From: Zygnema circumcarinatum SAG 698-1b
Lineage: Eukaryota > Plantae > Zygnematophyceae
Length of the DNA: 64,000 bases
NCBI GenBank assembly: GCA_037447605.1
Contig: CM074810.1
Span: 3,506,880-3,570,879, forward strand
Direction: 5' to 3'
Part shown: positions 12,127 to 52,700 of the stretch, piece after piece
Layout of the letters: the number at the start of each line of letters is the position of its first letter
Position numbering within the stretch: position 1 is the stretch's first letter
Notes under the pieces: model-generated
Seen by the model: the letters and a program-made list of their open reading frames with translations, nothing else
The model's database searches: none
What the model was told of the DNA's origin: nothing
Position numbers and translations under genes: made by a program

Positions 12127-12228
<102 letters not shown>

Positions 12229-13509: not shown

Positions 13510-13708
13510 GCCTCGGGATGGAAGGAAAGGGCGAGGGAGGGGGAGGGAGAGGGAGAGAGGGAGGTACGCTGAGTGAGTGGGAGAGGAGAGAGGTGTGGGG
13601 GGAGGTGACGAGGGAGAGGGAAAGAGGGAGAGGGAAAGAGGTAGAGAGGGAGAGAGGTGGAGGGAGAGGAAGAGGGGGCGAGAGAGAAAGGGAGAGAGAG
13701 GGAGAGTC

Positions 13709-15624
<1,916 letters not shown>

Positions 15625-25945: not shown

Positions 25946-26999
25946 TCTCGTCGTTCTTCCACCAACGTCCGTACGGCCGCTACATGGAGGCCGCTACCCT
26001 ACCGCGTTTTACGCAATTACGCTACAGCCGATCCATGCTCCCCCCTGTGCAGCGAGAGCAATTTTGTCGCGACTCGGTAATCTCCCTCCGTATGAACGGT
26101 ACGAAGATTAACGACAAAAGTATCGCCGAACCCGATCCCACCGCCCGGCCAAGCGATGCGCCACGTGGCACAAAGTACGCGTACAGTCACGTGGCGCCAT
26201 GATGGACCACCACGTGGCGAGGTGTATGTTCGTTGTACGGACACTAAGGCAGTGCCTTTGCCAACAGCAATATGGGAAACCACGAGGAGCGGGTGCCTGC
26301 TTCTGAGCCCTCCGCCTCTCTGAAAACCGCCTCTCCGCCTCTCCGCCTCCGCCTTTAAGAAAAACTGAAGAAGGTACGCCGCTGAAATTCATTCGCTACA
26401 TGATGGGTCGATGAAAAATAATCGATTTTGCCGCTTTTTGCACTGAGCAAATCTGTCATTGGCGCAAAGATGCAAAAGTGCGAAGGAAGAAACTCAGGAA
26501 AGAGTAATAGGAAGAAGAGAAACCCAAAAAACTTCTTCGCTTTCGTTAGTTAAAATTAAAATCTTCGACGTTTCCCTGCCTTGGAGTTGCCTCATCGACT
26601 TCTGATTTCTGCGACCCGCGAAGGATCAATTTCAGTTTCTATAAGCGTTGGGGTCCAAGTCATAACAAAGCCTGCACTAAGCACTAGGGTGGGGATCCGA
26701 CTGGGGGGGGATTTCTCCTCTATCCTTTTCGTTTTCTAATCTCACAAATCACACTTGCTGCCCCTCTCTCTCGCTCTCACGCTCTCCGCCATTCTCGAAT
26801 CCATCTAGAATGAAATAAGAAAGGGTGCTGAAAGGGTTCTGGATTGCGTTGGACGGAGTTCAACTCGTCACTTTCCTCTCAGACAACACTCGCCGCATCT
26901 CTCTCCTCCCCTCTCCGCCCTAACAACTCCCTCTCTGCAATTCGCTAAACAAGAATGTCACTGACTGGGTGTTGGGATGGGCCACATGCTCCTTCCTCT

Positions 27000-27560
27000 T
27001 TCTCCGACCTTCCCTCTCCCTCACTGCCCTTCCCTCTCTCCACCCGCCCCTCTTCATTCCTCTCCCTCACTGCCCCTCCTATCAGCCCGTCCCCCTTCAT
27101 TCCTCTCCCTCACTGCCCCTCCCTCTCCCCACCCACACATCTGCATTCCTCTCCCTCACTGCCCATCCCTCTCTTACCCGCCCCACTTCTCCACTCCCTC
27201 ACTGCCCATCCCTCTGTCCACCAGCTCCTCATCATTCCCCTCCCTCACTGCCTCTCCGTCTCCACCCGCCCCTCTTCATTCCTCTCCCTCACTGCCCCTC
27301 CCTCTCCTCCACCCGCCCCTCTTCACCCGCCCCTCTTCATTCCTCTCCCTCACTGCCCCTCCCTCTCTCCACCCGCCCCTCTTCATTCCTCTCCCTCACT
27401 GCCCCTCCCTCTCTCCACCCGCCCCTCTTCAGTCCTCTCCCTCACTGCCCCTCCCTCTCTCCACCAACCCCTCTTCAGTCCTCTCCCTCACTCCCCCTCC
27501 AACTCTTCACCCGCCCCTCTTCAGTTCTGTCCTTCACTGCCCCTCCCTCTCCTTCTACCC
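27000..27560. repeat. ~46-bp CT-rich minisatellite in the 3' flank of gene A (inverted counterpart ~32900-33440)
   Basis: Unit CTCTTCATTCCTCTCCCTCACTGCCCCTCCCTCTCTCCACCCGCCC, roughly a dozen copies per arm. Confidence 0.9.
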
Positions 27561-28120
27561 CTCTTCATCGCTTTCCCTCTCTACCCTTACCTCGCCCTGA
27601 GCCACTCGTTATCGCTGTCTCGCTGCCCTTTCCCTCTATTCGTCTCCCTTCCCGTCCCTCTCCCTCTCATCTCCCCCTCCCGTCCCGTTCCCCCCCTCCC
27701 ACACTCTCAATCCTCCTTCCTTCAAAGTTTCTCCTAGTAGCTTCTCTCCAGTCTGCACTTAACTTGGGAGGGACATCCCAAGCTACTCAAGCGGTGCCAG
27801 ATCACAGTCCGCATTTCACTCAAGCACGTGAGACAACACAGTTTTAAAGATAGCCAAAACTGCGGAACGTATCAATTACGTGAAAGAGCAAAAATTACAA
27901 CCCGTAAAAAAAGCCAGCGGTACAAGTTAAACTGCCACCCCTAACGCAAAATTTGGGCTGACCTTATTCTCCGTGGGTTCAAATGACCCGCGAAACCCTT
28001 CCTCAACACCACCTCGAAATGTTCGTATAAGCAAACATCCCTAATACTAATTCAGCAAGTCAGGAAAACACTCGTTTCAAATTGTTTCTCTTCCAACCTT
28101 CTACGACCACAAACAAGTTC

Positions 28121-29251
28121 CTAGTTCGCAATGGCCACCGCGCCACCCGCAGCGGTGTACTTGGCGGGCAGCTTGTCGAAGCCGAACCTGGGGCCGAGGT
28201 TCTGTACGGTCGGGCTCATGGTGAACACCACCCAGGCCTTCACGACCTTGGAGGTGGCGGCGTTGCCGTACGACTTGCGGGCGAACTGGAACACGATGGA
28301 GGCGATGGAGTAGGTGTTGGGGCCGGGCTTGTTCAGGATGTTGATGCCGCTGAAGTAGTTGCTGGAGAGGTTGGGGACGGGGTTGGGCAGAAGGGCGGCA
28401 AGGTCGGCCCCTTTGGCGGCGAAGATGTAGTTGCCGGCGGGGTTCAGAATGGCGGCCTGGGGAACGCCGTCAGTCACGCAGAGGCCGGTCTGGACGTATC
28501 CGATGGCGTTGACGTTGCCCTTGATGAGGGCGAGCACGCCGTCGGACTTGGCCCCATACTGAATGAGCTTGGAGACGGAGGAGAGGGTGTTCCACGGGGC
28601 GGTGGTGGTCGCCGGCCATGCCGCGACCTTGGACTTGATCCAGGACCCCACGACCTCGGTGGTGCCCGACTTGTCGGAGCGCGCTACGGGCACCACGGTG
28701 CCGCCGGCGCCGGCGAGGAAGTTGCTCCACGGGAGGGGCGAGTCGGAGGAGTAGATGTTGTAGACCTGCGAGCCGGTGAGCTTCAGCGCGGCGGACTTCT
28801 TGGTGCAGAACGAGTACGTCGCCACGGTGAAGGGGATCGTGTACTTGTTGGTGCCGCCGGCGGAGCTGTCCTGGGCGGCGGTGAGGGCGGCGTCGGAGAA
28901 GGCCACCTGGTAGGACTTGGAGATGAAGCTGGTAATGCCCGTGCCGGAGCCCACAGCCTGGTAGGAGCCATAGTTGGCCTTGGCGGAGCCGGAGGAGATG
29001 ATGGCCTGGGCAACGTACTGCATAACATGGCAATGGGGAGGGGGGGGAGGGTTCAGTCAATGGGCCATTGTCAGCAATTGGGGTTGGGTTGCGGGTTTTA
29101 AAGCAGAGAAGGAGAGAGAGAGAGAGAGGTGATTGGGGCAGAATAGGGGAAGGGGGTTTACGTCTTGGACGGAGGTAGCACCGCCGATCACGATGGCCTG
29201 GGAGGAAGTGGCGGAGAGGAGGAGGACGGCAGCGATGAGAAGGGCGGCCAT
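28121..29251 (-). CDS. pstS: Secreted PstS/DING-superfamily phosphate-binding protein, copy A (328 aa)
   Basis: Exon 1 29251-29162 (signal peptide MAALLIAAVLLLSATSSQA + IVIGGATSVQD), GT-AG intron of 144 nt, exon 2 29017-28121. Motifs GGAT, VGSG.G, SDA.L, RSDKSGTT, NAIGYV, TYSI. Confidence 0.9.
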
Positions 29252-30795
29252 GGCTGCCAGCGACAAGCAGACGAAGTGAGGATGGGAGGGAGGGAGGGAA
29301 GAAGGGAAGGCTGTTAGGAGGCAGTGGGCGGCTGGATTAAGTGCAAGGCTTGGGGAGGTATTATCCCGCGCGGTGCCTTTGTAGGGCGGGCGGGCGGTCA
29401 TGGCGGCGGGCGGCGGCGCCGCCCTGGGGCCGGGCCGACAATGGGAGGCATCTTTTTTTCGAAGATGCCGAGGAATCCCTGCGCGGCAGGCCGCGGGAAT
29501 GTCGGTGGACATGTCGGTGTGTCGGGTTTAGGGTGGCGGCCGCGTCTGGAAGTTGTCGGTTTGCGGGGGACGCGGAAGGACGCGCCATTTCTGTTTGCCG
29601 TATTTAAAAAGGTACTGATTCTATAACATTAAGCCAATCGCAGCCTGCCACGCTAGATATGTGAACACATGGCAGACTTTGATTTGCGCCCACTCGTTTC
29701 TTGTGCATTCGGGGATGGAGTAAACTAATACGTGTCCTGGGTTTCTTATTAAAATCCAGAAATCGCAGACTGCCACGTCGTTGCAATATGCCACGTGGCG
29801 ATCTTTGATCGGTTGTTTGTTCCGAAAAATTGGGACCCACGGGATTTGTCTTTTTCCGTTGGAAGCTTCGATACACTCTCGGATCTCACCGACAGGCATT
29901 TTGGAATATGCTTTCGTACATGACATTACACGTGTTACGGTGGACGACAAGGACCGACAGACGTGGCAGATTCTGTGGTACACTCAGCCCAATCCCTGGC
30001 TTGCGGATCTTACGATCCGTATGGGAAACTCCAAAAACTGCCGCATTTTTACTGCCCGTTTTGTTGTCCCGACGCTTCTTCAGAGGCGTGCCCGACAAAC
30101 TTCGGCCGTCGATGAAATGCGGCACACGGATCTGAACGTACAGTTCTATTGTCTGAGAAGATTTCAGCCCTGCCCTGAACTAACCGACAAAAAAAATACG
30201 GCGGCGTCGAAGCCGTCCGTACGCAAACGAAACGTTTTGTACATTGATTCTGCGAAATCGCGAATTGAATTAAAATCAGCGCGTCAAGGAGAACATATTT
30301 TGGCATGCGGCTAATCAGAAGGTGTCACTGCTCTAGATCCGCTAATGGGAAGCTGCCACGTGTATTATTTGCCAATCAGATTGCGGCACCCCAAGGTCGC
30401 TGGTTTTCAATGGCGAATCCGCGGCTTTGGCGGGTACGACCTGCCGCCAAGTGCGGCGCTTCTCGACAAAAGTCAAGGATCGGTGACGTTTTGGCGTTTT
30501 GTGTTAGTGCGCCCGCCCGGTTACCGTAATGGACGGACACACGTGCCAATTTCTGTCGCTTTGGATAACCATAAGTTTCCGCCAAGTAAAATTGAGGTCT
30601 ACTTTTGTCGTATTACTGCCACGTCTTGTTGTCGATGGACAAATCTACCGACATTCCGTTAAGGCCGCATGGAGACTGGCTGTGATTTGTAGTCCGACGT
30701 GGCGTCTGACGTGGTGTCCGGCGAGGCCGCCACATCACTAAACTGGAAGGGCCTTTCTCCATGACGCAACGCGGCAATATTTTTAGTTCAGCGCA

Positions 30796-34885
<4,090 letters not shown>

Positions 34886-35941
34886 ACATCCGTGAATCAG
34901 AAAAGGAAAAAACAACCATAAACCCAAAACCCGAAACCCTCCAAACTTTTGAATGCTGTTTTTTAAACTAATGGTTTACAACCTGATCTAGTCTTTGTTT
35001 GGACCTTTCCATGCATGAAGAAGAACATGTTGTGGAACTCGCGCCAACATGCGCGAGGTCTCTATAAGGTCGCAACCCTTTTCATATACACTCGCTAACT
35101 CGCTAAAAAATAATGGTGCTGAGTGGGCTCGTGGATGCGTTGGATGAAGTTCCCCTTCCTATCCCATCCCTCGCCTCTCGCAGACAGCACTCGCTGAATC
35201 TCACGCCCTCTCGCTACCCTTCCATCTTTCCCTCTCTACATTGCACTAAGAATGATGCTGGGATGGGCTACGTGCAATTTTCTCGTCCTCTAGCCTCCTA
35301 CGCCTCTGCCCTTTCCTCTCACTACGCTTCCTCTATCAAACTGCCCTTCTCTCGCGCTGCCCCTTTTCTCCACCCGTCCCTCTCCCTTCCTCTCTCTGCC
35401 CTGCCCTCTCTCTGCCCTGCCCTCTCTATGCCCTGCCCTCTCTATGCCCTGCCCTCTCTTGCTGCCCTGTACCTCGCACTGGCATCTCCCATTTCTCACC
35501 CTCCCGTCCCGTCTCTCTCCACTATCCCTCTTCCCCACCCCCGCAACCTCGCCCTCTTCCTCAATTCCATAGCTTGTCTCTCCAGACTGCACTAAATTTA
35601 GGAGACAAATCCCAAATTACTCTTGAAGAAAAACCAGATGCCAGTGAACTCTGCTTTTAACGCATAAACAAACTGCGGAACGTAATAATTAAGTGAAAAA
35701 GAGCAGGTTCTACAGCTCGTCAAAAAATCCCACCGTACAAGATCAACCCTAAATACTCTCAAGAAAAAACAGGGCATACCTTAATAAACTAATCCAGTTA
35801 AGACACTCTCCAAACCCTCGCCACTACCTCCAGATGCTCGTACCACCCAACACCCCTACCTATTAAGCAACAACAGCAGAAAGACGCTTACACTCTCAAT
35901 ATCTGCTGACCACACTCTCTTCTTAGACCAAAACGAAGTTC

Positions 35942-36140
35942 CTAGATCGCAATGGCTTCCTCGTGTGGGTGGGGGTTGCAGTCACAATTCGAGAAAATCC
36001 ACAAGGAGGTGAACCTCAAGTACATCGGTAAGCATGTCAATCGAGATTTGACTATCGGTCTGATGGTTTGAATGCATGTGTTAATGCTCTTGGAAGCTGC
36101 GGCGCTGTTTTGTCTGGCAGACCCGACATTCATGATTCGA
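35942..36140 (-). pseudogene. Decayed 3' remnant of a fifth phosphate-binding gene, with homologous 3' flank extending to ~35110
   Basis: AAGTTCCTAGATCGCAATGG (35937-35956) matches the stop region of A (AAGTTCCTAGTTCGCAATGG); reads ...SARQNSAAASK...EAIAI* versus FARKSYGNAATSK...AVAIAN*; 35575-35940 aligns to the C/D and A/B 3' UTRs. Confidence 0.65.
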
Positions 36141-37455
36141 GAGGAGGGAGGAGGGGGAAGGGGGGAACGTGGGGGGAGGGGCGGAGTGTGGGAGGGGGGA
36201 AGAAGGTGGGGGGAGGGAGGAGGGGGGAGGCTGGAGGGAGGGGGAGGGGGAGGAGGGAGGGAGGGAGGGGAGGGGGAGGGGGAGGGGGAGGGGGAGGGGG
36301 AGGGGGGAGGAGGGAGGGGAGGGGGAGGGGGAGGGGGAGGGGGAGGGGGAGGGGGAGGGGGAGGGGGAGGGGGAGGGGGAGGGGGGGGGCGGGGGAGTGG
36401 GGAGGGGGAGGGGGTGGGGGGAGGGGGAGGGGGAGGGGGAGGGGGAGGGGGGAGGTGGGAGGGGGAAGGGGAGGGGAAGGGGAGAGGGAGAAGGTGAGAG
36501 AAAGATGGCGACAAAACGAGGAGGTGAAGAATAAGGGTTATGGTTGAAAGATAAGGGCTTAAAAATCAGGGTTAAAAGTTCAAAGATTAGGGTTAAAATG
36601 TAGAATTTAACGTTCAGGTTTTAATGTTTAAGTAGGAGGTTTAATCTAAATAACAAGGGTTTCGGCTTGATGGTTTTTGTGTACAGTTTAGAGTTTAAAT
36701 TAGGGTTCAGGGGTTCAAGCCCTCGTGAGGGAGGGCTCAGGGTTCAGAATTCAGGGGTTCAAGCGAAACCCGACAGACAGGGACCGAAAGCGTTCCCGCC
36801 TTAGCGCGGCGGGAAGGCGTGTGACGTGACAGGGCGTGACATAGCGTGACGCGCAACACCCCATCCTCGCCGTGTTGCACTTTCTCATTCGTCTTTCACT
36901 TACTCCTTCAGTATGTGACGAATGAAAGTTAGTTTCACAAGAATGAAGTGCCAGCCAACTCTACCCAACCCATAAATTTTTTTTTATAGAAATATTGAAA
37001 GAAAAAGAAAAGAAGGAGAAAGGTAGACACCCCTCTCTCTATCTCTCCCCCTCCCCCGCACCTCCTCCCTCCTGCTCACTCTCTCACTCTCCGGGAAGTC
37101 TGCACTCAATTTAGGAGAGACATCCGAAGTTGCTCTTCAAGAGACCAGATTCGCACCTTCGACACGCTAGTGCCACAACACATGTTTATTCGTATGAAGA
37201 AAATGCGGAAAATATCAATTACGTGAAAACCAGCCCGTCGGAAAAACCCACCGTACAAGTTAAACCTGCCGCCCCTAGAGCAAAATATGGGCAATCCTTC
37301 ATCCCTATTGGATTCAGACACCCTCCAAACCCTCACCACTACCTCCAGATGTTCGTATCACCCAACACCCCTACCTATTCAGGAACAGCAGAAAGGCACT
37401 TATTTCTCTCAAACATCTGCTGCCCGCGCCCTCTCCTTCATCCAAAACAGAGTTC

Positions 37456-38437
37456 TTAGTTCGCAATGGTCACGGCAGCACCCGCAGCGGTGTACTGGGT
37501 GGGCAGCTTGTCGAAGCCGAACCTGGGGCCGAGGTTCTGTACGGAGGCGCCCATAGTGTACGTCACCCACGCCTTGACGATCCTGGAGGTGGCGGCGTTG
37601 CCGTACGACTTGCGGGCGAACTGGAACACGATGGAGGCGATGGAGTAGGTGTTGGGGCCGGGCTTGTTCAGGATGTTGATGCCGCTGAAGTAGTTGCTGG
37701 AGAGGTTGGGGACGGGGTTGGGCAGAAGGGCGGCAAGGTCGGCCCCTTTGGCGGCGAAGATGTAGTTGCCGGCGGGGTTCAGAATGGCGGCCTGGGGAAC
37801 GCCGTCAGTCACGCAGAGGCCGGTCTGGACGTATCCGATGGCGTTGACGTTGCCCTTGATGAGGGCGAGCACGCCGTCGGACTTGGCCCCATACTGAATG
37901 AGCTTGGAGACGGAGGAGAGGGTGTTCCACGGGGCGGTGGTGGTCGCCGGCCATGCCGCGACCTTGGACTTGATCCAGGACCCCACGACCTCGGTGGTGC
38001 CCGACTTGTCGGAGCGCGCTACGGGCACCACGGTGCCGCCGGCGCCGGCGAGGAAGTTGCTCCACGGGAGGGGCGAGTCGGAGGAGTAGATGTTGTAGAC
38101 CTGCGAGCCGGTGAGCTTCAGCGCGGCGGACTTCTTGGTGCAGAACGAGTACGTCGCCACGGTGAAGGGGATGGTGTACTTGTTGGCGCCACCAGCGTCG
38201 CCGTCCTGGGTGGTCGTGAGGGCGGCGTCGGAGAGGGCCACCTGGTAGGACTTAGCGATGAAGTTGGCGATGCCCGTGCCGGAGCCGACATTGGCGTAGG
38301 TGCCGTAGTCAGGCTTGGCGGATCCCGCGGAGAGGATGGCCTGGGCCACATACTGCGCAGCATGGCGATAGCGGGGGTTGGAGGGGAGGGTTTACTTACG
38401 GTTCTCAGCATTGGGAGGTTTGAAGTAGAGAAAGACA

Positions 38438-38475
<38 letters not shown>

Positions 38476-38635
38476 CAGCAGCAAGCAAGGGAGCAGAGGA
38501 AGGAGGGGTGAGGGTTCAGAGCGGTACGTCCTGCACGGAGGTGGCCCCGCCGATCGCAATGGCGGCCTCGGCGGAGGAGGCGGCGGAGAGGAGGAGGACG
38601 ACGGCGGCGGCGGCGAGGAGGCGGAGGGCGGCCAT
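37456..38635 (-). CDS. pstS: Secreted PstS/DING-superfamily phosphate-binding protein, copy C (334 aa)
   Basis: Exon 1 38635-38528 (MAALRLLAAAAVVLLLSAASSAEAAIAIGGATSVQD), intron with a (CTG)n tract, exon 2 38352-37456; same intron position as A/B. Confidence 0.9.
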
Positions 38636-38929
38636 GGCTACGGCGGGCGGCGAGGGTGAGGGGGCGGGCGGTAAGCAGTGGGCACTTGACTTTCGGCGCC
38701 CGCGCGGCCGCTTTGTAGCTCGCGGTGGGGCCCGCCCGCGCCACGTGGAGGCATCTCCGTGAGGGAGATTCCGAAGGATCAACAATGTCGGTGGACGCGT
38801 CGGTTTGTCGCGACACGTGGCGGTTCGGCGCTCGCCGACTGTCTTTGTTCCTGGTTTTGTCTTGAATGTAGATAGTTTACGCCAACGAGAAGACGCCACA
38901 TAGCCCTCCTCCGCTCGGCGCCTCCTGAG

Positions 38930-39312
38930 TAGGGATGGCCCGCGTTATAAAGTCCGACTATATTATATACTTTACAACGGGTTTAAAAGTAGTAATATAG
39001 TACAAAGTAAAACAGTTTATTACATATATTATACCCACTCGTTTTGAACAATTGATGACCGTACGACCGTACTCGTACGGTCGTGCGGTTGTACCATACC
39101 AAAATTAGGTCGTTTTGGCGTTGGCGTTGCGAAATGCGTCCGTCTGGTTCACTCCGTCTTCACTGCATAATACCGTACAGTCGTGTGACCGTACGACGGT
39201 ACGACCTTACATATTGTAAAGGCGTTGTAAAGTATTATATAACAGCCGTTATTTAGTCGTCACAGTTATATAATATAATATAGATTATATAGTCGTAATT
39301 AAGCCATCCCTA
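38930..39312. mobile_element. Non-autonomous hAT (Ac/Ds-like) MITE, 383 bp
   Basis: TIRs TAGGGATGGC (38930) / GCCATCCCTA (39303-39312); 8-bp TSD CTCCTGAG at 38922-38929 and 39313-39320; single-copy empty site in the paralogous arm (CTCAGGAG 41350-41357); internal GTACGACCGTAC-type repeats. Confidence 0.93.
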
Positions 39313-39889
39313 CTCCTGAGGCAATCCGCTGTCCCATCCAACGGCTCGATTCGCGCGGCACGTCGGATCGTGTCCCGTCAAAGTCGCGAAAGGCGACGAA
39401 AAGCGGATTGTAAAGCGACCGCGTGACGTGACGCGAGGTGGCACAAACACTCTGCGTGGCGTTCTATGCGTAAGCTGGCGTCGTTCAGTTCAGTGCAAGT
39501 CGGGACTCGTCGCGAATTCGCGCTTCGTACGGACGGCTCGTCGCGCCGCGAATAATCGCTCCGTTGGATCGGCGCCGTCGCGTGTGCCGTACGGCTTTAC
39601 AGGCCGTACAGAATCTGGCGCAATGATGGACGGCGGCGTCCCCGCCGTGCCGATTGACTGTCGTAGGTCTGTCGCGACGCCGATTGGGACCTGTGTGGAG
39701 AGATGGTCGTCCGTTTCTATGTGCTGCTTTCAGGCTCTTTGGCCCCTGCATGGGTCTGATGCATTGGTCCGACCTGTGAAGGGCTGCGCTGCGGAACATC
39801 GATACGTATCGTATGCGATATATCCGATATATGCGCTGTATCGGATGAATAGGCCCTCTGTACGGTCCTGTCGGCATATCGCTCCAAGG

Positions 39890-40190
39890 GTTGGGCCGTT
39901 GCGATGCGATCGACAGGCGTGTAAAATCCAACGGTCAAAAATCACCACGGGCTGCGCCGTGGGGATGCTCTCCTCAGGCGTGCAGACTCCAACGGTCGAA
40001 AATCCTCGACGGATGGAGCTGTTGCGATGCGTTTCTTCGGCGTGTAGAATCCAACGGTCAAAACGAATCGCCGATGTGCGCCGCTGGAAGCGTTCCTCAG
40101 GCGTGCTGAATCTGTCAAAGAAGACTGAACGGGCTGCGCCGTTTGGATGCGTTCCTCACGCGTGCGCGATCCAACGGTCGAAAATATTTG
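39890..40190 (+). repeat. ~61-bp tandem repeat x5 carrying TCCAACGGTC (MSA-like) motifs
   Basis: TCCAACGGTC at 39927, 39988, 40050, 40170, with one degenerate unit near 40111. Confidence 0.8.
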
Positions 40191-40914
40191 ACAGGCTTCG
40201 CCGATGGTGAATCAGATTCTAGCTCCGCGGTGAACATGGGCGATTGTTCCTTTCGCGACATAAAGGCATGAAGGCATGAAGGCATGAAGGCATGAAGGCA
40301 TGAAGGCGTGGCTGCTCGTGATGCGGCCCTTCGCAAGGAACGCGCCTATGCCCACCGTGACGTGACGCGGCCGACGAGTTTGTTCCTATGGCTATTGAGA
40401 TTCTTGGTTGCCTCAACATTCGATTGGATGCCTTCCTTCCTTCGCCAGTGCTTGCGCCCATCGCTCCTTCGAGATGCGCGCACAGCCCTGGAAGAAAGCC
40501 CTCCTCCGGCGATGCTGGCTCCTTTTTTTATTGACAGCGTATATTTGTCGCCCTTCAGCGTTGTCAACCTCGCTTCTCCGCTCCTTCGGCGTGAAGCCAC
40601 TCTTATTTGCTCCCTCTGCCCGATGTTGCCTCACATCGGTGACCCCTTAGCGCTCAGTTTTTCCTCGTGGTTCTTCCCCATGATGATGTTGTCCATGCAT
40701 ATTCAATGGCAGCATCGCCATCGTGAGGCCAATGCCATTTTCTCTCTCGCGACACTTGGTGAAACAAGGAACCGCTCTCTTAGAAAACTAGAAAGTGCCA
40801 CGTGACGTGACATCCACGTGCACTTTCAAAATTTCAGAGCGAAGAGAGCGATGGATAGCACATGACGACAATTTGGGGTCCCATCGATTGGTGCCACGTC
40901 ACCGTGATTCCGTC

Positions 40915-42709
40915 TACGGATGCCATTGGCAACGCGACAAACCTGGGACAGCCAATCGCCACGAAGGGGCCGCCGCAGTCCATCATTGCCCCCGACTCTG
41001 TACGGCATGTATCCACTGTACAACATGTACGGGTTGTACAACATGTACCACCTGTGTGGGCCACGCGACGAAGCAGATCCGATGGAGAGACTCTTCGCGG
41101 CGCGACAAGCCATTCGTACGGAATTCGTCGCGACGCGCCGTCTGTACAGAACGCCTAGCCACGAGCCCCGATTCGCACTGCACTGAACGGCGCCAGCTTA
41201 CACATAGAACGCCACGCAGAGTGTTTGTGCCGCCTCGCGTCACGTCACGAAGACGCTTTCACAATCCGCTCTTCGTCGCCTTTCGCGAATTTGACGGGAC
41301 ACGATCCAACGTGCCGCGAATCGAGCCGTTGGATGGGACAGCGGATTGCCTCAGGAGGCGCCGAGTGGAGGAGGGCTACGTGGCGTCTTCTCGTTGGCGT
41401 AAACTATCTACATTCAAGACAAAACCAGGAACAAAGACAGTCGGCGAGCGCCGAACCGCCACGTGTCGCGACAAACCGACGCGTCCACCGACATTGTTGA
41501 TCCTTCGGAATCTCCCTCACGGAGATGCCTCCACGTGGCGCGGGCGGGCCCCACCGCGAGCTACAAAGCGGCCGCGCGGGCGCCGAAAGTCAAGTGCCCA
41601 CTGCTTACCGCCCGCCCCCTCACCCTCGCCGCCCGCCGTAGCCATGGCCGCCCTCCGCCTCCTCGCCGCCGCCGCCGTCGTCCTCCTCCTCTCCGCCGCC
41701 TCCTCCGCCGAGGCCGCCATTGCGATCGGCGGGGCCACCTCCGTGCAGGACGTACCGCTCTGAACCCTCACCCCTCCTTCCTCTGCTCCCTTGCTTGCTG
41801 CTGCTACTGCTGCTGCTGCTGCTNNNNNNNNNNTCCAGCAACTACTTCAGCGGCATCAACATCCTGAACAAGCCCGGCCCCAACACCTACTCCATCGCCT
41901 CCATCGTGTTCCAGTTCGCCCGCAAGTCGTACGGCAACGCCGCCACCTCCAGGATCGTCAAGGCGTGGGTGACGTACACTATGGGCGCCTCCGTACAGAA
42001 CCTCGGCCCCAGGTTCGGCTTCGACAAGCTGCCCACCCAGTACACCGCTGCGGGTGCTGCCGTGACCATTGCGAACTAAGAACTCTGTTTTGGATGAAGG
42101 AGAGGGCGCGGGCAGCAGATGTTTGAGAGAAATAAGTGCCTTTCTGCTGTTCCTGAATAGGTAGGGGTGTTGGGTGATACGAACATCTGGAGGTAGTGGT
42201 GAGGGTTTGGAGGGTGTCTGAATCCAATAGGGATGAAGGATTGCCCATATTTTGCTCTAGGGGCGGCAGGTTTAACTTGTACGGTGGGTTTTTCCGACGG
42301 GGTGGTTTTCATGTAATTGATATGTTCCGCATTTTCTTCATACGAATCAACATGTGTTGTGGCACTAGCGTGTCGAAGGTGCGAATCTGGTCTCTTGAAG
42401 AGCAACTTCGGATGTCTCTCCTAAATTGAGTGCAGACTGCACGGAGAGTGAGAGAGTGAGCAGAAGGGAGAAGGTGTGGGGGAGGGGGAGAGATAGAGAG
42501 AGGGGTGTCTACCTTTCTCCTTCTTTTATTTTTCTTTCAATTTTTCGATAATTTTTTTTTTTATGGGTTGGGTAGAGTTGGCTGGCACTCCATTCTAGTG
42601 AAACTAACTTTCATTCATCACATACTGAAGGAGTAAGAGAAAGACGACTGAGAAAGTGCAACACGGTGAGGATGGGGTGTTGCGCGTCACGCCCTGTCAC
42701 GTCACACGC
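40915..42709 (+). repeat. Right arm of inverted duplication 2 (contains gene D)
   Basis: Reverse complement of 36818-39690 minus the MITE; interrupted by a 10-N gap. Confidence 0.9.
41644..42079 (+). CDS. pstS: Secreted PstS/DING-superfamily phosphate-binding protein, copy D (middle lost in an assembly gap)
   Basis: Exon 1 41644-41751 is identical to C; intron runs into N at 41824-41833; 41834-42079 encodes the C-type last 81 aa and stop. Confidence 0.8.
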
Positions 42710-43755
42710 AGCACCGCAGCGCCAAGGCGAGCTGCGTCGACGGTTGGATTCCGCACGTGCGAGGAACGAAAAGCCACGGCGCCCCTTTGGCTGACCGCAC
42801 AGCGCGGGCGATACGTTCGATATATCGCTCGTATCGGGCACAACACCGCGAAACGAGTCCTCACTCAGCCTCGCCGCTGCCGTTCCATTATGTGGCGATT
42901 GGGGGTGGCACCGTTCCATTCCCGTCCGTTCCGTTGCTCCGTGGCGGGGCCACCGCAACAGGGTACGCACGAAAAACCGGAACTCTCAAGTCTCAGGAAC
43001 CCTCTTAAACCCTAAACCCTACACATTAACCTTATATTCCAAACCCTTATTAGTTAGCCTTAACCCAATCTCAAGCCCTAAAGTTTAAAGTTGCGTTTTG
43101 ATCCCTAATCCATAACCTTAACCATTATTATTAACCTTAACCATAATTATTAACCTTCACCATAATTATTGGAACTTTGGACCCCGAACATTTCGCCCTT
43201 GTTCTAACCATTAATCGTATTCATCACCAAAGCCCAAATTCAAATTTCAAAAGGATGCGTACTGTGCAACAGCTTAGAACTCGCGTTATTCTTCCGAACG
43301 GTAAAGAGCTCGCGAGGCTCTGGTCCTTTGACTGCCTCTATGCTTCCGTTACGTTCTACTGCAACCTCCTTCTGAACTGGACTGCGACAAAACTGGGGGC
43401 ATGAAATGAATCCCGACGAGAATGTGGGTGTGCAAAAGCGACCAAAAAAAATCTATACGCAATTGTTGAAATTCACTAGTTAAGGTTTTACAATTCAAAC
43501 GAGAAAAACGAGGAGAGGGCGAGGGAGAGGGAGAGGGAGGGGAGAGGGAGAGGGAGGGGAGAGGGAGAGGGAGAGGGAGNNNNNNNNNNGGGAGAGGGAG
43601 AGGGAGAGGGAGAGGGAGAGGGAGAGGAAGAGGGAGAAGGAAAGGGAGAGGGAGAGGGAGAGGAGAGGGAGAGGGAGAGAGAAGTGAATCTACACATGCA
43701 ACCCTTGATACCCTTTGTTCCGTTCCTTTCTGTACACTCTGATCGACCGGTCGCT

Positions 43756-46700
43756 CTACAGCTCATGAATCGTGGGACGCACAGCCTCAGGATGACAGGT
43801 GGCAGAATCTGAGCCGTCCATTCCTGCCTTCGCTTCATCCGTCCGATGTCTCCTCGCGAGGAGCTGCGCCGCTTCGCGCTTCTCCAGACCGCTTTTATTT
43901 TTTAGTTTTTTCGCCTTTTTATTACATTTTGGGGCCGGGAGGCCGTGGAGGGCAGAGAGGCGCCGCAGCGATTGGAGGCCCTCCAGAAGAGAGCGCTCCT
44001 CCAGGACCTCGGAGACGCTGACTGAGTCTCTCAGCCTGGAGGGAGGGAGAGGGAGGGAGGGTGGGATGGATGGAGGAGGGAGGAGGGAGGGAGGAGGGAG
44101 GGAGGAGGGAGGGAGGAGGGAGGAGGAGGGAGGCGGGAGGAGGGAGGAGGGAGGAGGGAGGAGGCAAGTGGAGGAGGGAGGGAGGAGGGAGGGAGGAGGG
44201 AGGGAGGGAGGAGGGAGGGGAGGGAGGGAGGGAGGGAGGGAGGAGGGAGGGAGGGAGGAGGGAGGGAGGGAGGGAGGGAGGAGGGAGGAGGGAGGAGGGA
44301 GGGGAGAGGAGGGAGGAGGAGGGAGGGAGGGTGGGAGGTGGAGGGAGGGAGGGAGGGAGGAGGGAGGGAGGGAGGGAGGGAGGGAGGGAGGGAGGGAGTG
44401 GAGGGAGGGAGGGGAGGGGTGTGGAGGGAGGGAGGGAGGGAGGGGAGGGAGGGAGGGAGGGAGGGGAGGGAGGAGGGAGGAGGAGGGAGGGAGGAGGAGG
44501 GAGGGAGGGAGGAGGGAGGGAGGGAGGAGGGAGAGGGAAAATGAGGGAGGTAGAGAGAGGTAGAATGAGGACGATAAGGGGGAAGTGGGAGGGAGATAGA
44601 GGGGGGAGAAAGAGGGAGAGAAGGGAATAGAGAGAGGAAAAGTGGGAGAGACAGGGAGAATTAGGGAGAGGGGGAAGGGGAGAGAGGGAGAGAGGGATTA
44701 GGGAAAGAGAGAGGGTAGGAGGGAGCGAGAGAATGCGGGAGGGAGGGAGTGATGTAGCGGAGGCGAAGAGAGGGAGAAGTAGGTAGACAGGAGGAGAGAG
44801 GGCTAGGAAGCGAAAGTGGGAGAGAGAGAGAGATGAGAAGAGAAAGAGAGAGAAATAGAGAGAGAGCGAGGTAGATGGGGAGAGAGAGAGACCTTGCCAG
44901 CCGTCTCTCCAACTCCCCCCTCCTCCTCTCCCATTTCGCCGCTGCTCTCCCTCTCTCTCCCGACAGCGCCTTTATTCCCGCAGCTTCCCTCACAACAGAC
45001 TTGGCCAGAAGCTTCCTGGAAACCGCATCTCCTCTTCCCACAATTAGGGTTCAGGGTTAGGATGTAGGGTTCAGAGTGGAAGGATGAAGGTTTAGGATTA
45101 CGGATCAGGGCTAGGGTTTAAAGTGTAAGTTTTAAGGCATAACGTTTTAAAGTTTCGGGTTTAGGGTTTATAGTTTAGGGTTGAGGGTTAACGGTCCCAT
45201 GTTTCAAGTTTAGGGTTTAGGGTTTAGGTAAAAAGAAATAACTCTGTTAAAAGGAATCTAAACATGACCAAGAAAGCACCCGAAAAATCCCCTAAGAAAC
45301 TCACGACCTAAACCCAAAAAAAAAAAAAAAAAAAAAAAACCCAAAAACCTCCACAAAAAGGGGCCCATGAATTCAATGCTTTAAAAAAGAAGGGTGTAGA
45401 TGGGGGGCATACATGCTATCAGTAGAGGACAAATCGGAGGTACTCCATCTCCCTGGCTGCAGCTTGAGAGAGGAAGGGCGAGAGGGAGGGAGAGAGGGAG
45501 AGAGAGAGGGAGGGAGAGAGGTAGAGAGAGAGGAACTCTCCTTCTTGTGTTCGAGCCCCCTCAGACTTCTCCTGGGACCCCTCCCTCTCCTCCGAACGTC
45601 CTCATTTTCTTCCTCTTTTTGCCCTTTCCCACCCTCTCCTTCACCTTCAACCACAGCTGCTCCTCGGCCTACCTCCCCCCTCACACCCACACCACTCCGC
45701 CTCCGCTCTCTCCTCTCATCTCTCGCAACTCCCTCTCCCTTCTCTTCTTCCACTCCTTCCTCCCTCATTTCCCCCTCTCCCTCCTCTCCACCTTCCCCCT
45801 GCCCCACTCCTCCCTCACCTTCCTCCCCCCCCTCTCCCTCCCTTTCCTCTTCCTCCTCTCTCGCTTCCCCCTCCTTGTCTCTCTCCTCCCTCCCCTTGTC
45901 CTCCTCCTCCCTCCCATTCTCCCCGTCCTCCCTCCCCTTCTCCCCCTCCTCCCTCTCCTCTCTCACCTTCGCCCTTTCCTTCTTTCTCTCCCTCTCCTTC
46001 TCCCCCTCCTCCCTCTCCCTCTCCCTCTCCCCCTCCCTCTCCCTCTCCCTCTCCCTCTCCCTCTCCACAACCACCCGCTTAGCCCTTGCGGCCGCCTCCC
46101 CCATGAGCTCCCTCGCGAGCAGGAAGACCCCTCCCTCCCTCTCCTCCCTCTCTTTGGAGCACAGTACGGAGGGAGGGAGGGGAGGGAGGAGTTGCTGGAC
46201 GAGACGTGACGTACGGCGCAGTCTCCATGTGGCCGCCGCAACGGAATCCGATTCACTGAGCATCTCTTTCCATGTGCTCTTCGGAGAGCGGAGGGGAGAG
46301 GAGGAGGCTCTCTCTCTCTCTGGGCTTTTTGGGATTGCCTCCACTGCCTGGGGTTGGTCGAGAGGAGGGAGGGAGGGAGGGAGGGAGGGAGGGAGGGAGG
46401 GAGGGAGGGAGGAAAGTGGAGGGAGAGAGGGGGGGAGGAGATGGAGGGAGGGAGGAAAGTGGAGGGCGAGAGGGGAGAGGGAGGGAGGAGAGGGGGAGGA
46501 GAGGGAGGGAGGAGAGAGGCAAGGAGTGAGGTAGGAAAGATGGCGAGGGAGAGGAGAGAGAGATGTGGAGAGGATTGCACAGGGTCAGACGACGAGGAGA
46601 GAGAGAGGGAAAGCGGAGGGAGAGAGGATTGTGAAGAGAGTGAGAGGAAAGGAGAGCAAAGATCAATGGAAATTTAGGGTTTAAGGATTTACCGTTAATA

Positions 46701-49700
46701 TCTCAGCCCTTACCTTTAAAGCAGCAAGCCACCGTTTCTCTGATTCCCTGTTTCAGGGAAGCAAAGTAACAAAAAATCGTCAGAAAACAAAATCCACATA
46801 AAAAAAAAAAATAGGAAGTGGAGAGAAAATTAAAAACTCGAAACACAAAACTGTGAAATTTTGAATTCTCCAAACCTCGATGTCAGACTCCCAAGGAAAA
46901 AAACAAAAAAAAAAAAAAAAATCCTTACAAAGGCGTCAAAATTTTCGCTCCGGGCAGCGCAGCCGCGTGCCAGGGGAGTAAGGGCTCCTCCATTTCCCGT
47001 TTTGCTGAAAAATTTTCATCGCTGCCCGGCGAAAAAACGACTTTTTGCTCGGACGTCTTTACTGAAGCAGCTTGAACTGCCGGTTCTGTTGTTTCAGGTA
47101 AAATTTCAGGAGAATTCAACAGAGCTTCCTTGTCCTTATTCGTCAAAAATGTGCTCGTTTCATCTGTACATAAAGGGGCAGGACTTGACTTGAATTGACC
47201 TTTACTCAAAGGGTTAACTTTGAAAAAATTTCTCTCCAATCCAACGGTGGGAGGAGGGGTCTGGAACAAAGACTCGTTTGACGGAATCGCCGTTCTATGT
47301 AACGGACTGCTGTTTCCGTTCTGCGTCCAGTTCTGGGTAACGGAATTCAGTTCCTGTTCTGCCGAACCCCCTCCGCTGTCTACATGCGTTACCTGTTCAG
47401 TTNNNNNNNNNNTCAATGCTTTAAAAAAGAAGGGTGTAGATGGGGGGCATACATGCTATCAGTAGAGGACAAATCGGAGGTACTCCATCTCCCTGGCTGC
47501 AGCTTGAGAGAGGAAGGGCGAGAGGGAGGGAGAGAGGGAGAGAGAGAGGGAGGGAGAGAGGTAGAGAGAGAGGAACTCTCCTTCTTGTGTTCGAGCCCCC
47601 TCAGACTTCTCCTGGGACCCCTCCCTCTCCTCCGAACGTCCTCATTTTCTTCCTCTTTTTGCCCTTTCCCACCCTCTCCTTCACCTTCAACCACAGCTGC
47701 TCCTCGGCCTACCTCCCCCCTCACACCCACACCACTCCGCCTCCGCTCTCTCCTCTCATCTCTCGCAACTCCCTCTCCCTTCTCTTCTTCCACTCCTTCC
47801 TCCCTCATTTCCCCCTCTCCCTCCTCTCCACCTTCCCCCTGCCCCACTCCTCCCTCACCTTCCTCCCCCCCCTCTCCCTCCCTTTCCTCTTCCTCCTCTC
47901 TCGCTTCCCCCTCCTTGTCTCTCTCCTCCCTCCCCTTGTCCTCCTCCTCCCTCCCATTCTCCCCGTCCTCCCTCCCCTTCTCCCCCTCCTCCCTCTCCTC
48001 TCTCACCTTCGCCCTTTCCTTCTTTCTCTCCCTCTCCTTCTCCCCCTCCTCCCTCTCCCTCTCCCTCTCCCCCTCCCTCTCCCTCTCCCTCTCCCTCTCC
48101 CTCTCCACAACCACCCGCTTAGCCCTTGCGGCCGCCTCCCCCATGAGCTCCCTCGCGAGCAGGAAGACCCCTCCCTCCCTCTCCTCCCTCTCTTTGGAGC
48201 ACAGTACGGAGGGAGGGAGGGGAGGGAGGAGTTGCTGGACGAGACGTGACGTACGGCGCAGTCTCCATGTGGCCGCCGCAACGGAATCCGATTCACTGAG
48301 CATCTCTTTCCATGTGCTCTTCGGAGAGCGGAGGGGAGAGGAGGAGGCTCTCTCTCTCTCTGGGCTTTTTGGGATTGCCTCCACTGCCTGGGGTTGGTCG
48401 AGAGGAGGGAGGGAGGGAGGGAGGGAGGGAGGGAGGGAGGGAGGGAGGGAGGAAAGTGGAGGGAGAGAGGGGGGGAGGAGATGGAGGGAGGGAGGAAAGT
48501 GGAGGGCGAGAGGGGAGAGGGAGGGAGGAGAGGGGGAGGAGAGGGAGGGAGGAGAGAGGCAAGGAGTGAGGTAGGAAAGATGGCGAGGGAGAGGAGAGAG
48601 AGATGTGGAGAGGATTGCACAGGGTCAGACGACGAGGAGAGAGAGAGGGAAAGCGGAGGGAGAGAGGATTGTGAAGAGAGTGAGAGGAAAGGAGAGCAAA
48701 GATCAATGGAAATTTAGGGTTTAAGGATTTACCGTTAATATCTCAGCCCTTACCTTTAAAGCAGCAAGCCACCGTTTCTCTGATTCCCTGTTTCAGGGAA
48801 GCAAAGTAACAAAAAATCGTCAGAAAACAAAATCCACATAAAAAAAAAAAATAGGAAGTGGAGAGAAAATTAAAAACTCGAAACACAAAACTGTGAAATT
48901 TTGAATTCTCCAAACCTCGATGTCAGACTCCCAAGGAAAAAAACAAAAAAAAAAAAAAAAATCCTTACAAAGGCGTCAAAATTTTCGCTCCGGGCAGCGC
49001 AGCCGCGTGCCAGGGGAGTAAGGGCTCCTCCATTTCCCGTTTTGCTGAAAAATTTTCATCGCTGCCCGGCGAAAAAACGACTTTTTGCTCGGACGTCTTT
49101 ACTGAAGCAGCTTGAACTGCCGGTTCTGTTGTTTCAGGTAAAATTTCAGGAGAATTCAACAGAGCTTCCTTGTCCTTATTCGTCAAAAATGTGCTCGTTT
49201 CATCTGTACATAAAGGGGCAGGACTTGACTTGAATTGACCTTTACTCAAAGGGTTAACTTTGAAAAAATTTCTCTCCAATCCAACGGTGGGAGGAGGGGT
49301 CTGGAACAAAGACTCGTTTGACGGAATCGCCGTTCTATGTAACGGACTGCTGTTTCCGTTCTGCGTCCAGTTCTGGGTAACGGAATTCAGTTCCTGTTCT
49401 GCCGAACCCCCTCCGCTGTCTACATGCGTTACCTGTTCAGTTATCTCCAACAAACTTTCAACTTTCGGAGATGCATGATGAACTGAAGGGTTTCCGAACC
49501 TGCCCGTTCCATGTGACAGAAATTCCGTATTCCCAAACAGATTTTTCACTCCGTTGCCCCTTACTGAAAGGCTAACATTAGCGTTGTCAATACCGTTCTG
49601 TGTCCCCTGACTTTTGTCGTTTTCTGGAAGTAAACATTCTTGAAAAGCGGAGTTCCCTTTTTGAACATTGACTGAATGATGATGATGCTCTCCAGGACCT

Positions 49701-52700
49701 TGTCTCGGCGTTCCATGTCCATGGTTTCCGTCCGCAGTTCCGTTGACTTTTGGACTATTCGCGGCCGTTCCCTCTTGCTTTTGCGGAGTCCACCTGTTGC
49801 TATGCATTCCAAAACCACCATTTCTATGTCCGAAATTTTGCAAATTCGCCGTTTTCTCAGTGTTTGACGGAGTCCTCGAATTCTGGGTGGTTCCCAATGA
49901 GTGCATGGGTGACGTCAGCGATTTTGTATCTCCTGGTGATGTCAGCAACCTCAAACCAGTCCCTGCTGACGTCAGCACCCTTGAATCTCCATTAGACGAC
50001 GTCAGCAACCTGGAATCTGCTCCGGATGACGTCAGCAATCTCGGATCTGCTCCATATGACGTCAGCCGACTCGTCTGCCCTGGGGTTGAAGACATCCTTC
50101 CAACCCCAGATGACGTCAGCAACCCCGGATCTGTTCCAGATGCCGTCATCATACTCGTCTGCCCTGGAGTTGAAGGCATCCTCCCAACCCCAGGTGACGT
50201 CAGCAATCTTGTCTCTTCTCTCCCTAGCTGCCTAGCAAGCTCTTTCGCAGACCTTGCAATGCCGAACAAATTCTGACCGGCGGTTAGGGCTAAGCTTGGT
50301 CCCTTAGCTTCCAAAACCTCTCTCTCCTTCACCCTCTCTTCCTCCCTCTTCTTAGCCGAACCTCCTCTCCCTCTCTGCCCCGCTCTCCCTCTCTCTCTCT
50401 CCCTCTCTCTCTCCCTCTCCTTCTCCTCTTTCTTCAACCTCGCCTCTTCCTTTTTCTTCGTTTTTTCCTCCTCCTTTCTCGCTCTCTCCTCCTCTCTCTT
50501 CCTCGCTTTCTCTCCCTCCATCCTCCTCTTCTCCTCCTTCCGTTTCACCTCTGCTTCCATTTTCACTCTTTTCGCTTCTTCCTTGGAAACTTTCGCTACC
50601 TCACTCGTCTCCTTTCCTGGAAGCTTCCACTGACCAGCAAACTCTGATTGGCCCCCACCTCCCAACCTTAAATTGTCATTCCCCAAATAAGTATAACTAT
50701 TTTCATTCATAGCCCCCAAACTGAAATTGCCTCCTGAGAAAAATGGAGACCCCCCATTTCCTTCGCTTTTAGGGGGTATTATCGGAACAGAAGAAGCTGC
50801 ATGTGGAATATTTACATGTCCTGGAAGCATCAAGTTACCTCCCCCTCCCACTCCCACACCCACTTCCACTCCCACTCCTCCTACCCCTCTCCCACTCTGA
50901 CGAGAAGCAAACGGTTGTAGCTCATGGACTTTCTCGGAAGTTTCCTCTGCTTTCCCTGCCCTCATAAACCCCTTCTTTACTGGACCGAACCCCCCTCTCC
51001 CATCCTCCTCCTCCTCCTCCTCCCTCCCTCTTTTCTTGCTCCCTCGCTTCAGTTTTTCACTCCCTCCTGGAGAAACAAACCCAGAGTTTGGCCTTATTTC
51101 ATTAGATTTTACATCCATACCCCACCCCGTTTGACCCCCTCTTTCAAACCCTAATTCTGCACCTGCTTTTCCTTCAGAATTGCTTTGAATTTCACTACGA
51201 GCCTGCATGTCCATATTGAAGTATCCCTTTCCCCAACTCTGCACCCCTCTCCCACTCTCTCCCACACCCTCCCTCTCCCCCTCTCTCTCCCTCTCTTCTC
51301 CCCCCCCTCTCCCACCCCCAGAATTCCCCCATATCGCTTGCAACTCCTGCATTTTCCCTCCTTCATGAAACCCATTCCATCCTGAAGTCTTCTGCCCCGT
51401 TCCATGCTGCGAATCCGTTAAATTGTGGGCCATAGCCGCCGCCATCTCCTTCCGTTGAACGGAATCCTGACTGAAATTCTGAACTGAATTGAGAGCAGAA
51501 TTTGAAACGGGTTGCGGATTATTGAAGGGAGAAGTTCCCACATTTCCTGAATTCTGCTTATGTGGGTCGGTGAAAGGTGATCTGCCCATTTGTTCGCCTC
51601 TGCATTCACAGAAAGGTGGGGGAGAGCAAGAGAGAGAGGGGGGAGACGGAGAGGGGGAGGGAGAGGGAAAAAGGGAGGAATTTTCGCAGGGGAGAGGGGA
51701 CGGAATGAGACAAAAAAGGAGGAAGAGGTAGAAAGGGGAGAATAAATCGCGAGAGTGCGTTCAGCAAGGGAAGAGTGTGGGAGAGCGAACAGGAGAGGGA
51801 GAGAGAGAGAGAGGGGGGTTACGTTTCCTTTTGTGATCAGAACTACGTAGCGACTTCTATTAATCATCAAGTTGCGATTTGATGAAGGACCTTAGCGACC
51901 GTAGAACACGCGTTCAAAATTAAACTGGAACTGAACTGGAACAGATCTTAAACTGCATAGAACGGCTTCACAAGGAACGTACCCGAGTGTCCTCCCCCCA
52001 ACCGGCCGTTGAGGAGGAGGGGAAAAGTTGCTGTCAGAAGGGGCCCTTGCAACCTGCAAAGGTTTGGACAATTCGAACGTAAGCAGCTGCAACACAGCAT
52101 GGAATGGGCGCCATAGAGGGTANNNNNNNNNNGGGGGGAAAAGGGAGAAGGGAAGGGGGAGGGGAGAAAAGGGAGAAAGGAGGGGGGAGGGGGGAGGGGG
52201 GAGGGGCGAGGGAGATCGACAGGGGAGGGATAGAGAGTGAACGAGAGGATGGAGAAACAACGGGCGTTAGAAACGTCGCGTAAATAGACAATTGAGCAAA
52301 GACAATGTACCTGCCCAGCCTGGTCTTGCCAAGGCGATGCCTTAAGTATTCCTGTCTCGGCCTGCTCGCTTGGTCTACTCTCACTGCCGGAAGCTTCCTT
52401 CAGCCTTTGATTCCACATGTTAACCATTTCGTCCAAAGAGATATCAACTCTCCTCAACTGCTCTCCCTCTCTCCCTCCCTCGTGGTTTACACTTTGAGTG
52501 GAAATATTTTGGGCCAATGAGTCTCGAAGGGTCAGATTGAGAGCTTGGGACCACGTGGCACTGTTACCTCCCTCTCTTTCAACCCCCATTTCCTGGTAGA
52601 TCGAATTTCTGTCAGTTGAATGAGGTAATGGCGATTGAAAATTAAACCCTGCTTCTACTCCCCCCCCTCCTCCTCCTCCTCCTCCTGTTCCTCCTCCTCC

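Follow-up and report, generated by a model that had tools for sequence, protein, structure and literature searches.

Palindromic genes for predicted secreted PstS-type phosphate-binding proteins in the streptophyte alga Zygnema circumcarinatum

Gene models, palindromes and transcripts

The sequence analysed here, referred to below as the window, is a stretch of 64,000 nt from the streptophyte green alga Zygnema circumcarinatum SAG 698-1b (GenBank assembly GCA_037447605.1, contig CM074810.1, positions 3,506,880 to 3,570,879 of the forward strand); all coordinates are counted from its first nucleotide. Between 28.1 and 42.1 kb it contains four units coding for proteins similar to the bacterial phosphate-binding protein PstS, grouped head to head in two pairs, A(-)/B(+) and C(-)/D(+). 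Gene models were obtained by reading the DNA directly and by building models with a script. Gene A (28121..29251, minus strand) consists of exon 1 (29251..29162), an intron (29161..29018) and exon 2 (29017..28121, including the stop codon) and encodes 328 aa. Gene B (30976..32335, plus strand) is composed of exon 1 (30976..31065), an intron (31066..31438) and exon 2 (31439..32335) and also encodes 328 aa, while gene C (37456..38635, minus strand) has its exon 1 at 38635..38528, its intron at 38527..38353 and its exon 2 at 38352..37456, resulting in a protein of 334 aa. Proteins A and B are identical (981 of 987 nt of their coding sequences coincide), and the exon 2 protein of C is 90.6% identical to that of A. 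The introns of A, B and C are all of GT..AG type, are inserted in phase 0 and lie immediately 3' of the codons for GGATSVQD. Their lengths vary among the copies, and they harbor microsatellites: a long CT run in B and (CTG)n in C and D.

Each of the A, B and C proteins carries a single N-terminal hydrophobic segment devoid of Cys (i.e., without a lipobox), which is read as a signal peptide, and no further hydrophobic stretch that might serve as a membrane anchor follows it (KD19 at most 1.0). The predicted mature proteins are 309–310 aa long (~31.8 kDa, pI 9.4–9.6) and begin with IVIGGATSVQD or AIAIGGATSVQD (short forms IVIGGATS and AIAIGGATS). Two Cys and one NLS sequon are present in each protein, and the G+C content at third codon positions (GC3) of the genes is 0.92–0.93. 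The original prediction, made from the DNA letters, had listed the spliceosomal intron at a common position, the signal peptide without lipobox Cys or membrane anchor, the two Cys, the sequon and the very high GC3; the gene models and the hydrophobicity profiles of A–C bear out all of these. It had also counted four genes. Three of them are complete, and the fourth, D, is broken by an assembly gap. The locus probably represents four, and at least three, active nuclear genes. Contamination was considered and rejected in view of the introns, the eukaryotic microsatellites within them, the plant-type neighbours and the fact that several studies have DNA runs in which the locus is recovered.

Gene D (41644..42079, plus strand, incomplete) comprises exon 1 (41644..41751), 72 nt of intron, a gap of N (41824–41833) and the end of exon 2 (41834..42079). 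The gap sits within the (CTG)n run of the intron. The part to the left of it, exon 1 with its 72 nt of intron, is 100% identical to C; the 246 nt to the right encode the last 81 aa and the stop codon, and this protein segment is identical to that of C as well. The two flanks are not continuous: 754 nt of C are absent, namely 103 nt of intron and 651 nt of exon 2, the latter corresponding to 217 codons that include most of the ligand motifs. In two independent sequencing runs the public DNA contigs are interrupted at the same CTG repeats, and none bridges the gap. The k-mer depth of the shared core is 3.9–5.5x that of the unique spacer, yet 1.45–1.75x that of the two-copy exon 1 contig, which fits 3 to 5 copies. 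Assembly collapse is the likelier cause of the gap, because the palindrome arms are symmetric on both sides of it and the break falls inside a microsatellite.

Both gene pairs lie in palindromes. Palindrome 1 (27307..33149) encloses genes A and B between arms 27307–29047 and 31409–33149, which are 99% complementary and separated by a spacer of ~2.4 kb. Palindrome 2 (36984..42551) encloses C and D; its arm segments are 36984–37701 / 41834–42551 (98%) and 38456–38929 / 41350–41823 (100%), and nothing except the gap interrupts the arm. The comparison of exon 2 between the A/B type and C is instructive: all 52 differences are confined to the first 180 and the last 128 nt, and the central 589 nt contain none. 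This identical tract (37584..38172 on the minus strand in C, 28249–28837 in A) has a synonymous divergence (dS) of 0, and the ends show dS of ~0.31 and a ratio of nonsynonymous to synonymous divergence (dN/dS) of ~0.5. Since a core with dS of 0 is flanked by ends with dS of ~0.31, the tract is read from the sequence as the sharp trace of gene conversion between paralogues that are older and under constraint. Gene conversion would thus keep the head-to-head palindromic pairs similar, and the locus, though small, is a clean case of palindromes in which the edges of a conversion tract are sharp.

The locus is present in many sequencing runs labelled with the same organism. In two of these, X8 and X11, contigs cover exons and untranslated regions (UTRs) and none covers unique spacer, as is expected of RNA. 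The most informative is X11 contig 11 (889 nt). Over exon 2 of C it has 17 mismatches, and those listed fall on sites at which A and C differ; the contig is consequently assigned to an A/B-type transcript. Upstream of exon 2 position 63 the contig has 182 nt, of which 67 are letters of exon 1, with the indel pattern relative to D and the end point (41706) expected from exon 1 of A/B. As a retained intron of 144 or 373 nt would exceed the space available there, the contig, and with it A/B-type mRNA, is spliced. The end of X11 contig 16 coincides with the last base of exon 1 (41751, the donor). For gene C, RNA-like contigs cover exon 2 and the 3' UTR. Such contigs also extend to the D-specific sequence 41300–41349 upstream of the arm, and therefore the promoter side of D is transcribed. 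One low-depth X8 contig enters the intron by 16 nt at the acceptor and is read as an unspliced trace. Another RNA-like contig, X8 contig 25 (37276–38114), combines the 3' UTR and the C-terminal codons of C type with an A-type patch of 12 differences at 37545–37583; a de Bruijn chimera would explain this, as would an additional paralogue or allele that has its own conversion tract.

In the interval from B to C, tblastn revealed no fifth coding copy ("psi"). All that is found there is a degenerate relic (35528..35955, plus strand) with 69% similarity to the 3'-flanking sequence of C, in which no coding remnant was detected. It adjoins a G/A-rich low-complexity block (35942–36550; C/T-rich on the minus strand) of 23 overlapping repeat copies spaced by 8–14 nt, which gives rise to poly-Pro and Gly/Arg/Glu "ORFs" (open reading frames) on opposite strands. 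Both arms of palindrome 1 contain a 46-nt minisatellite (at least 12 copies at 90% identity, 26955–27850 and 32812–33512). It is pyrimidine-rich, and all three frames are open as Pro/Ser-rich "ORFs"; since 46 is not divisible by 3, the minisatellite is probably non-coding. In the spacer between C and D the summed depth of public DNA contigs reaches ~9,000–17,000 in two bins (38810–39191) and ~800 at 39192–39382; with ~40–60 in unique sequence, 38810–39382 is a very high-copy repeat, which is present in the RNA-like runs too. A second, moderately repeated block of this spacer occupies 40147–40528. Downstream of D the contigs of both DNA runs differ from the window at three positions (42302 G>C, 42312 T>C and 42346 A>T), which could reflect errors of the assembly or variation between strains within the palindrome arm. 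The window contains a further run of N (XXXX in an ORF) at about 43488–43838, shortly downstream of the cluster and within CT-rich DNA of low complexity.

Protein family, fold and predicted phosphate site

All protein searches were performed with exon 2 alone. It matches the Pfam family PF12849 (PBP_like_2) with 56.3 and 58.1 bits at a gathering cut-off of 27, and the PstS model TIGR00975 with 76 and 74.7 bits (E = 2.6e-21). The best solved relatives by sequence are the cyanophage PstS structures 7XG7 and 7XG8 of the Protein Data Bank (PDB). The AlphaFold2 (AF2) model, calculated from a family alignment of 22 sequences, has a pLDDT of 88.9 and a pTM of 0.88. When it is compared with the PDB by Foldseek, places 1–20 are all occupied by solved PstS or PhoX structures (TM 0.71–0.80, E 1e-16 to 1e-20). 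Profile search and structure prediction had been proposed together with the original prediction as ways to check it; the outcome of both, a PBP_like_2 score above the cut-off and a model closest to solved PstS, agrees with what it had expected.

The alignment of the family with E. coli PstS (sequence from the annotated K-12 record, list of ligands from established structural work on 1IXH and related entries) contains the invariant columns S63, D81, R160, S164 and G165 in precursor numbering, which are Ser38, Asp56, Arg135, Ser139 and Gly140 of the mature E. coli protein. Thr141 (precursor T166) is nearly invariant, Asp137 is present in the RSDKSGT motif, and the GGAT of exon 1 aligns over GAGAT of E. 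coli, which harbors Thr10. The placement of intact E. coli ligands in GGAT, GSG, SD and RSDKSGTT, claimed originally, holds in this alignment. Judged by sequence, the predicted phosphate site is complete, and it would be of D-type (Asp-type), because the equivalent of Asp56 is present; in cyanobacterial PstS1 a site of this type provides nanomolar phosphate affinity (PMC13614923). On the basis of sequence and model the proteins are predicted to be phosphate binders of PstS type.

The algal proteins resemble bacterial and cyanophage PstS (TIGR00975 / PF12849; 7XG7, 1IXH, 1PC3) in the type II periplasmic-binding-protein fold, in size, in the phosphate ligands including the Asp of the low-barrier hydrogen bond, and in having an N-terminal signal removed just before the G-G-A-T strand. 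In contrast to the bacterial proteins, with which they share only 20–31% identity, they score below the equivalog cut-off and are encoded by nuclear genes with a spliceosomal intron and an ER-type (endoplasmic reticulum) signal peptide without lipobox. Their locus, moreover, is palindromic and multi-copy and lacks a pstCAB-phoU operon.

Algal relatives, shared intron and surroundings

Word-indexed searches with the window protein, the family profile and one relative (P0074) returned almost only bacterial PstS at no more than 31% identity, or very few relatives. Closer proteins were found only by an exhaustive HMMER search: they are 33–41% identical to the window proteins, 325–346 aa long, and each has a signal peptide followed by GGA(T/S)S. 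Those with a named source all come from algae, i.e. Mesotaenium endlicherianum (ME000013S00800/797, two neighbouring pairs), Spirogloea muscicola (SM000365S13725/13721, including a head-to-head pair 8 kb apart), Closterium (CAI5530945, with the intron position of the window genes), Mesostigma viride (Mv02212, 3–4 tandem PstS domains), Tetraselmis GSL018 (A0A061RD09, two PstS domains) and Paulinella micropora (g12391, two PstS domains). Land plants are absent among the relatives with a nameable source. Among the relatives, one algal protein of 1165 aa (P0129, encoded at 24–3521 of locus L007, a 3.7-kb mRNA contig) is composed of two Fea1 domains, a PstS domain and somatomedin B, and others consist of 2–4 PstS domains in tandem and have no membrane or permease domain.

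A tree of 95 domains was calculated with IQ-TREE under LG+C20 with posterior mean site frequencies (PMSF); its bootstrap did not fully converge. All 13 rows known to be eukaryotic, together with the window proteins, fall into a clade of 52 rows (ultrafast bootstrap, UFBoot, 99 / SH-aLRT 97) that contains zero known bacterial rows and is likely to be purely eukaryotic. Within it the window proteins form a long branch in a 27-row clade of single-domain proteins (100/99). Besides the membership of this clade, the window genes and the other algal homologues have in common the signal peptide followed by GGA(T/S)S and the occurrence of neighbouring duplicate pairs, seen also in Mesotaenium and Spirogloea; the window proteins differ in the modest identity to their nearest relatives given above, in their long private branch and in being single-domain. 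The tree was inspected also for a cyanobacterial origin, as the best PDB match is cyanophage PstS; the cyanophage/cyanobacterial group is not sister to the algal clade, and no claim of such an origin is made.

The position of the intron is shared beyond Zygnema. In Closterium it interrupts the gene at the same codon boundary (GGASTFAT followed by gtaagt...cag), and so it does in a eukaryotic metagenome contig (GGATSCKD followed by gtaagt...cag), which also carries a gene of a long-terminal-repeat (LTR) retrotransposon. Overall, a phase-0 intron eight residues after the first Gly of GGA(T/S) is found in the window copies, in Closterium (L001) and in metagenome contigs (L002 and L003). It follows from the shared position that a eukaryotic, intron-bearing gene existed before these lineages split. 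Clade and intron, both read from sequences, point to an old algal family descended from PstS and vertically inherited within green algae, with no recent import. The proteins had originally been called probably bacteria-derived. Derivation from bacteria is plausible only if it happened long ago, and for the time since then the clade and the Closterium intron fit vertical green-algal inheritance.

Algal PstS as such is not new to the literature. Tables of diatom transporters list signal-peptide-bearing PstS of "prokaryote origin" (PMC3237598), the phosphate genes counted in picoeukaryotes include PstS (PMC11409870), and in marine metatranscriptomics phosphate stress is marked by diatom pstS transcripts (bioRxiv 10.1101/2025.04.09.648040). 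The original prediction had named a published account of vertical inheritance across green algae as a finding that would speak against it. Vertical inheritance does fit the present data, but in the literature on PstS with streptophytes, with Klebsormidium, or with PF12849 in algae no description of the streptophyte family or of its mechanism was found; likewise, the literature searched yielded no functional study of algal PstS homologues. The locus is a further member of a known but functionally unexplored algal family, to which it contributes two palindromes, a conversion tract and evidence from RNA-like contigs that the transcripts are spliced.

No partner of a bacterial Pst transporter accompanies the genes: with E. 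coli PstA, PstB, PstC and PhoU as tblastn queries, no match in the 64-kb window had an E value below 0.8, in agreement with the initial claim that it contains no pstA/B/C, and no pst partner is present at the three homologue loci examined. Upstream of the cluster (5326–8289), one ORF encodes the end of a domain of DCD (development and cell death) type and another encodes Kelch repeats, a plant-type combination that matches the ordinary plant-type neighbours described originally. Downstream, 45373–46666 and 47413–48706 contain the same set of ORFs at an offset of 2,040 nt, which indicates a tandem duplication; the long ORFs tested there have no Pfam match; neither have two long minus-strand ORFs (874 and 531 aa) at 48965–53543.

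Possible role and alternative readings

The explanation that accounts best for the observations overall, and in which we place moderate confidence, is that the genes encode a secreted, transporter-independent phosphate-binding PstS of an old algal family. The probable role would be extracellular phosphate capture without an ABC transporter. The pre-protein would lose its ER signal peptide, giving a soluble basic mature protein with the two-lobed "Venus flytrap" fold, and this protein, presumably a basic glycoprotein, would be released between plasma membrane and cell wall, into the wall itself or into mucilage, where it could capture orthophosphate through its putative high-affinity (Asp-type) site. 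The captured phosphate might raise the local supply for H+/Pi or Na+/Pi symporters or be buffered, with no PstCAB involved. A functional analogy is offered by FEA1/FEA2 of Chlamydomonas (Pfam Fea1, "low iron-inducible periplasmic protein"), which are secreted and thought to concentrate a scarce nutrient beside non-ABC transporters. A link between the two is P0129, which joins Fea1 and PstS domains in one polypeptide; fold and ligand of FEA1/FEA2 are unrelated to those of PstS, and what we infer is analogy, not homology. By association, the relatives built of tandem PstS domains without a permease domain and the use of diatom pstS transcripts as phosphate-stress markers are in line with a capture role. 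Extending the analogy, domesticated PstS proteins of streptophyte and other green algae may feed Pi symporters in an FEA1-like manner, having been expanded by self-homogenising palindromes here and perhaps lost in land plants, a proposal to which we give somewhat less than even credence.

Several points weigh against this interpretation. The kind of runs X8 and X11 is recorded as "?", and they are called RNA from their coverage pattern alone. The TIGR00975 scores fall far short of the equivalog cut-off of 205, which makes the proteins family relatives to which function is not transferred automatically. The sequence modelled by AF2 begins after the first 11 mature residues, among them the equivalent of Thr10. 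Most rows of the 52-row clade are unlabelled metagenome or transcriptome contigs. The absence of PstCAB applies to the 64-kb window, and the extracellular hand-off to symporters is purely our inference. The phrases "amplified for dosage" and "phosphate scavenging or storage", used originally, are to be understood in the same conditional way.

Other identities of the bound ligand or of the family have to be weighed against this picture. In several motifs the original prediction had seen resemblances to DING proteins, which are reported from eukaryotic sources; a eukaryotic DING gene at this locus would solve the "missing DING gene" problem. DING proteins (PfluDING 2Q9T, HPBP 2V3Q) do belong to the same superfamily as PstS and have fold, ligands and phosphate-ligand logic in common with it, their chains still match the family profile (E about 1e-23 to 1e-25), and the predicted mature N-terminus includes GGAT, like DINGGGAT. 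All canonical PstS chains nevertheless outscore them, with 113–147 bits (147.5 for 7XG7, 126 for M. tuberculosis PstS-1, 121 for E. coli PstS) vs 85–91 bits for PfluDING, HPBP and other DING chains. In the Foldseek comparison DING structures appear at rank 21 and below with a TM by target of 0.62–0.64 (about 0.63), low because DING are ~65 residues longer, and a single-sequence search of the PDB gave no DING at E < 0.01. The mature proteins lack DINGGG at their predicted N-terminus and the DING-specific insertions, and have ~310 aa and 31.8 kDa vs 372–381 aa (~375) and about 38–40 kDa; they also have clear nuclear loci. DING identity is therefore rejected on the lower profile and structural scores, the N-terminus and the length, and we regard it as extremely improbable; the resemblances noted initially are contradicted by profile, Foldseek, N-terminus and size alike. 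A tempting but false lead is thereby removed: the "gene-less" eukaryotic DING proteins are not accounted for by these loci. The long branch, the identity of at most 31% to any bacterial PstS and the score under the TIGR00975 cut-off would be compatible with proteins that bind a different oxyanion or phosphorus compound (arsenate, phosphite, phosphonate, polyphosphate ends), or with a wall protein in which ligand binding has been lost. We consider this quite unlikely, as all phosphate ligands, including the discriminating equivalent of Asp56, are conserved in these copies and dN/dS of ~0.5 at the diverged ends indicates constraint.

Two further alternatives accept phosphate binding and assign it a different role. 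In the Chlamydomonas chloroplast the SulP transporter has a nuclear-encoded sulfate-binding protein, and after this model the algal PstS could be a subunit of a bacterial-type ABC importer in an organelle envelope, with PstC/A/B-like genes elsewhere in the genome. Its closest structural and sequence relatives are indeed ABC-dependent PstS proteins, and in this genome the partner search covered the 64-kb window. We find this very unlikely: hydrophobicity sets in at residue 3 of the N-terminus, as in an ER signal peptide and not as in a plastid transit peptide, neither the window nor the three homologue loci have a pst partner, and tandem multi-domain and Fea1-fused relatives are ill-suited to permease docking. 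Not quite as unlikely is a sensor or signalling component that reports external phosphate to a membrane receptor instead of serving uptake. Bacterial PstS feeds PhoR/PhoU signalling, and the Pst system doubles as a phosphate sensor (PMC11528361); the intact predicted site and the absence of a transporter partner in the window would suit such a function too. The near-identical copies, the very high GC3 and the RNA contigs in many runs, however, fit an abundant bulk protein better, the relatives with 2–4 tandem PstS domains or Fea1 fusions point to capture capacity, and no candidate receptor is known.

Among nutrients, phosphate is often the one in limiting supply; the prevailing view is that eukaryotes take it up by symporters alone. 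A secreted algal PstS, here multi-copy and expressed in a close algal relative of land plants and belonging to a family that occurs across green algae, would be a candidate for an additional step, outside the cell, by which algae acquire phosphate. If this is true, it would represent an undescribed mode of eukaryotic phosphate acquisition, with a bearing on phosphorus foraging by the ancestors of land plants.

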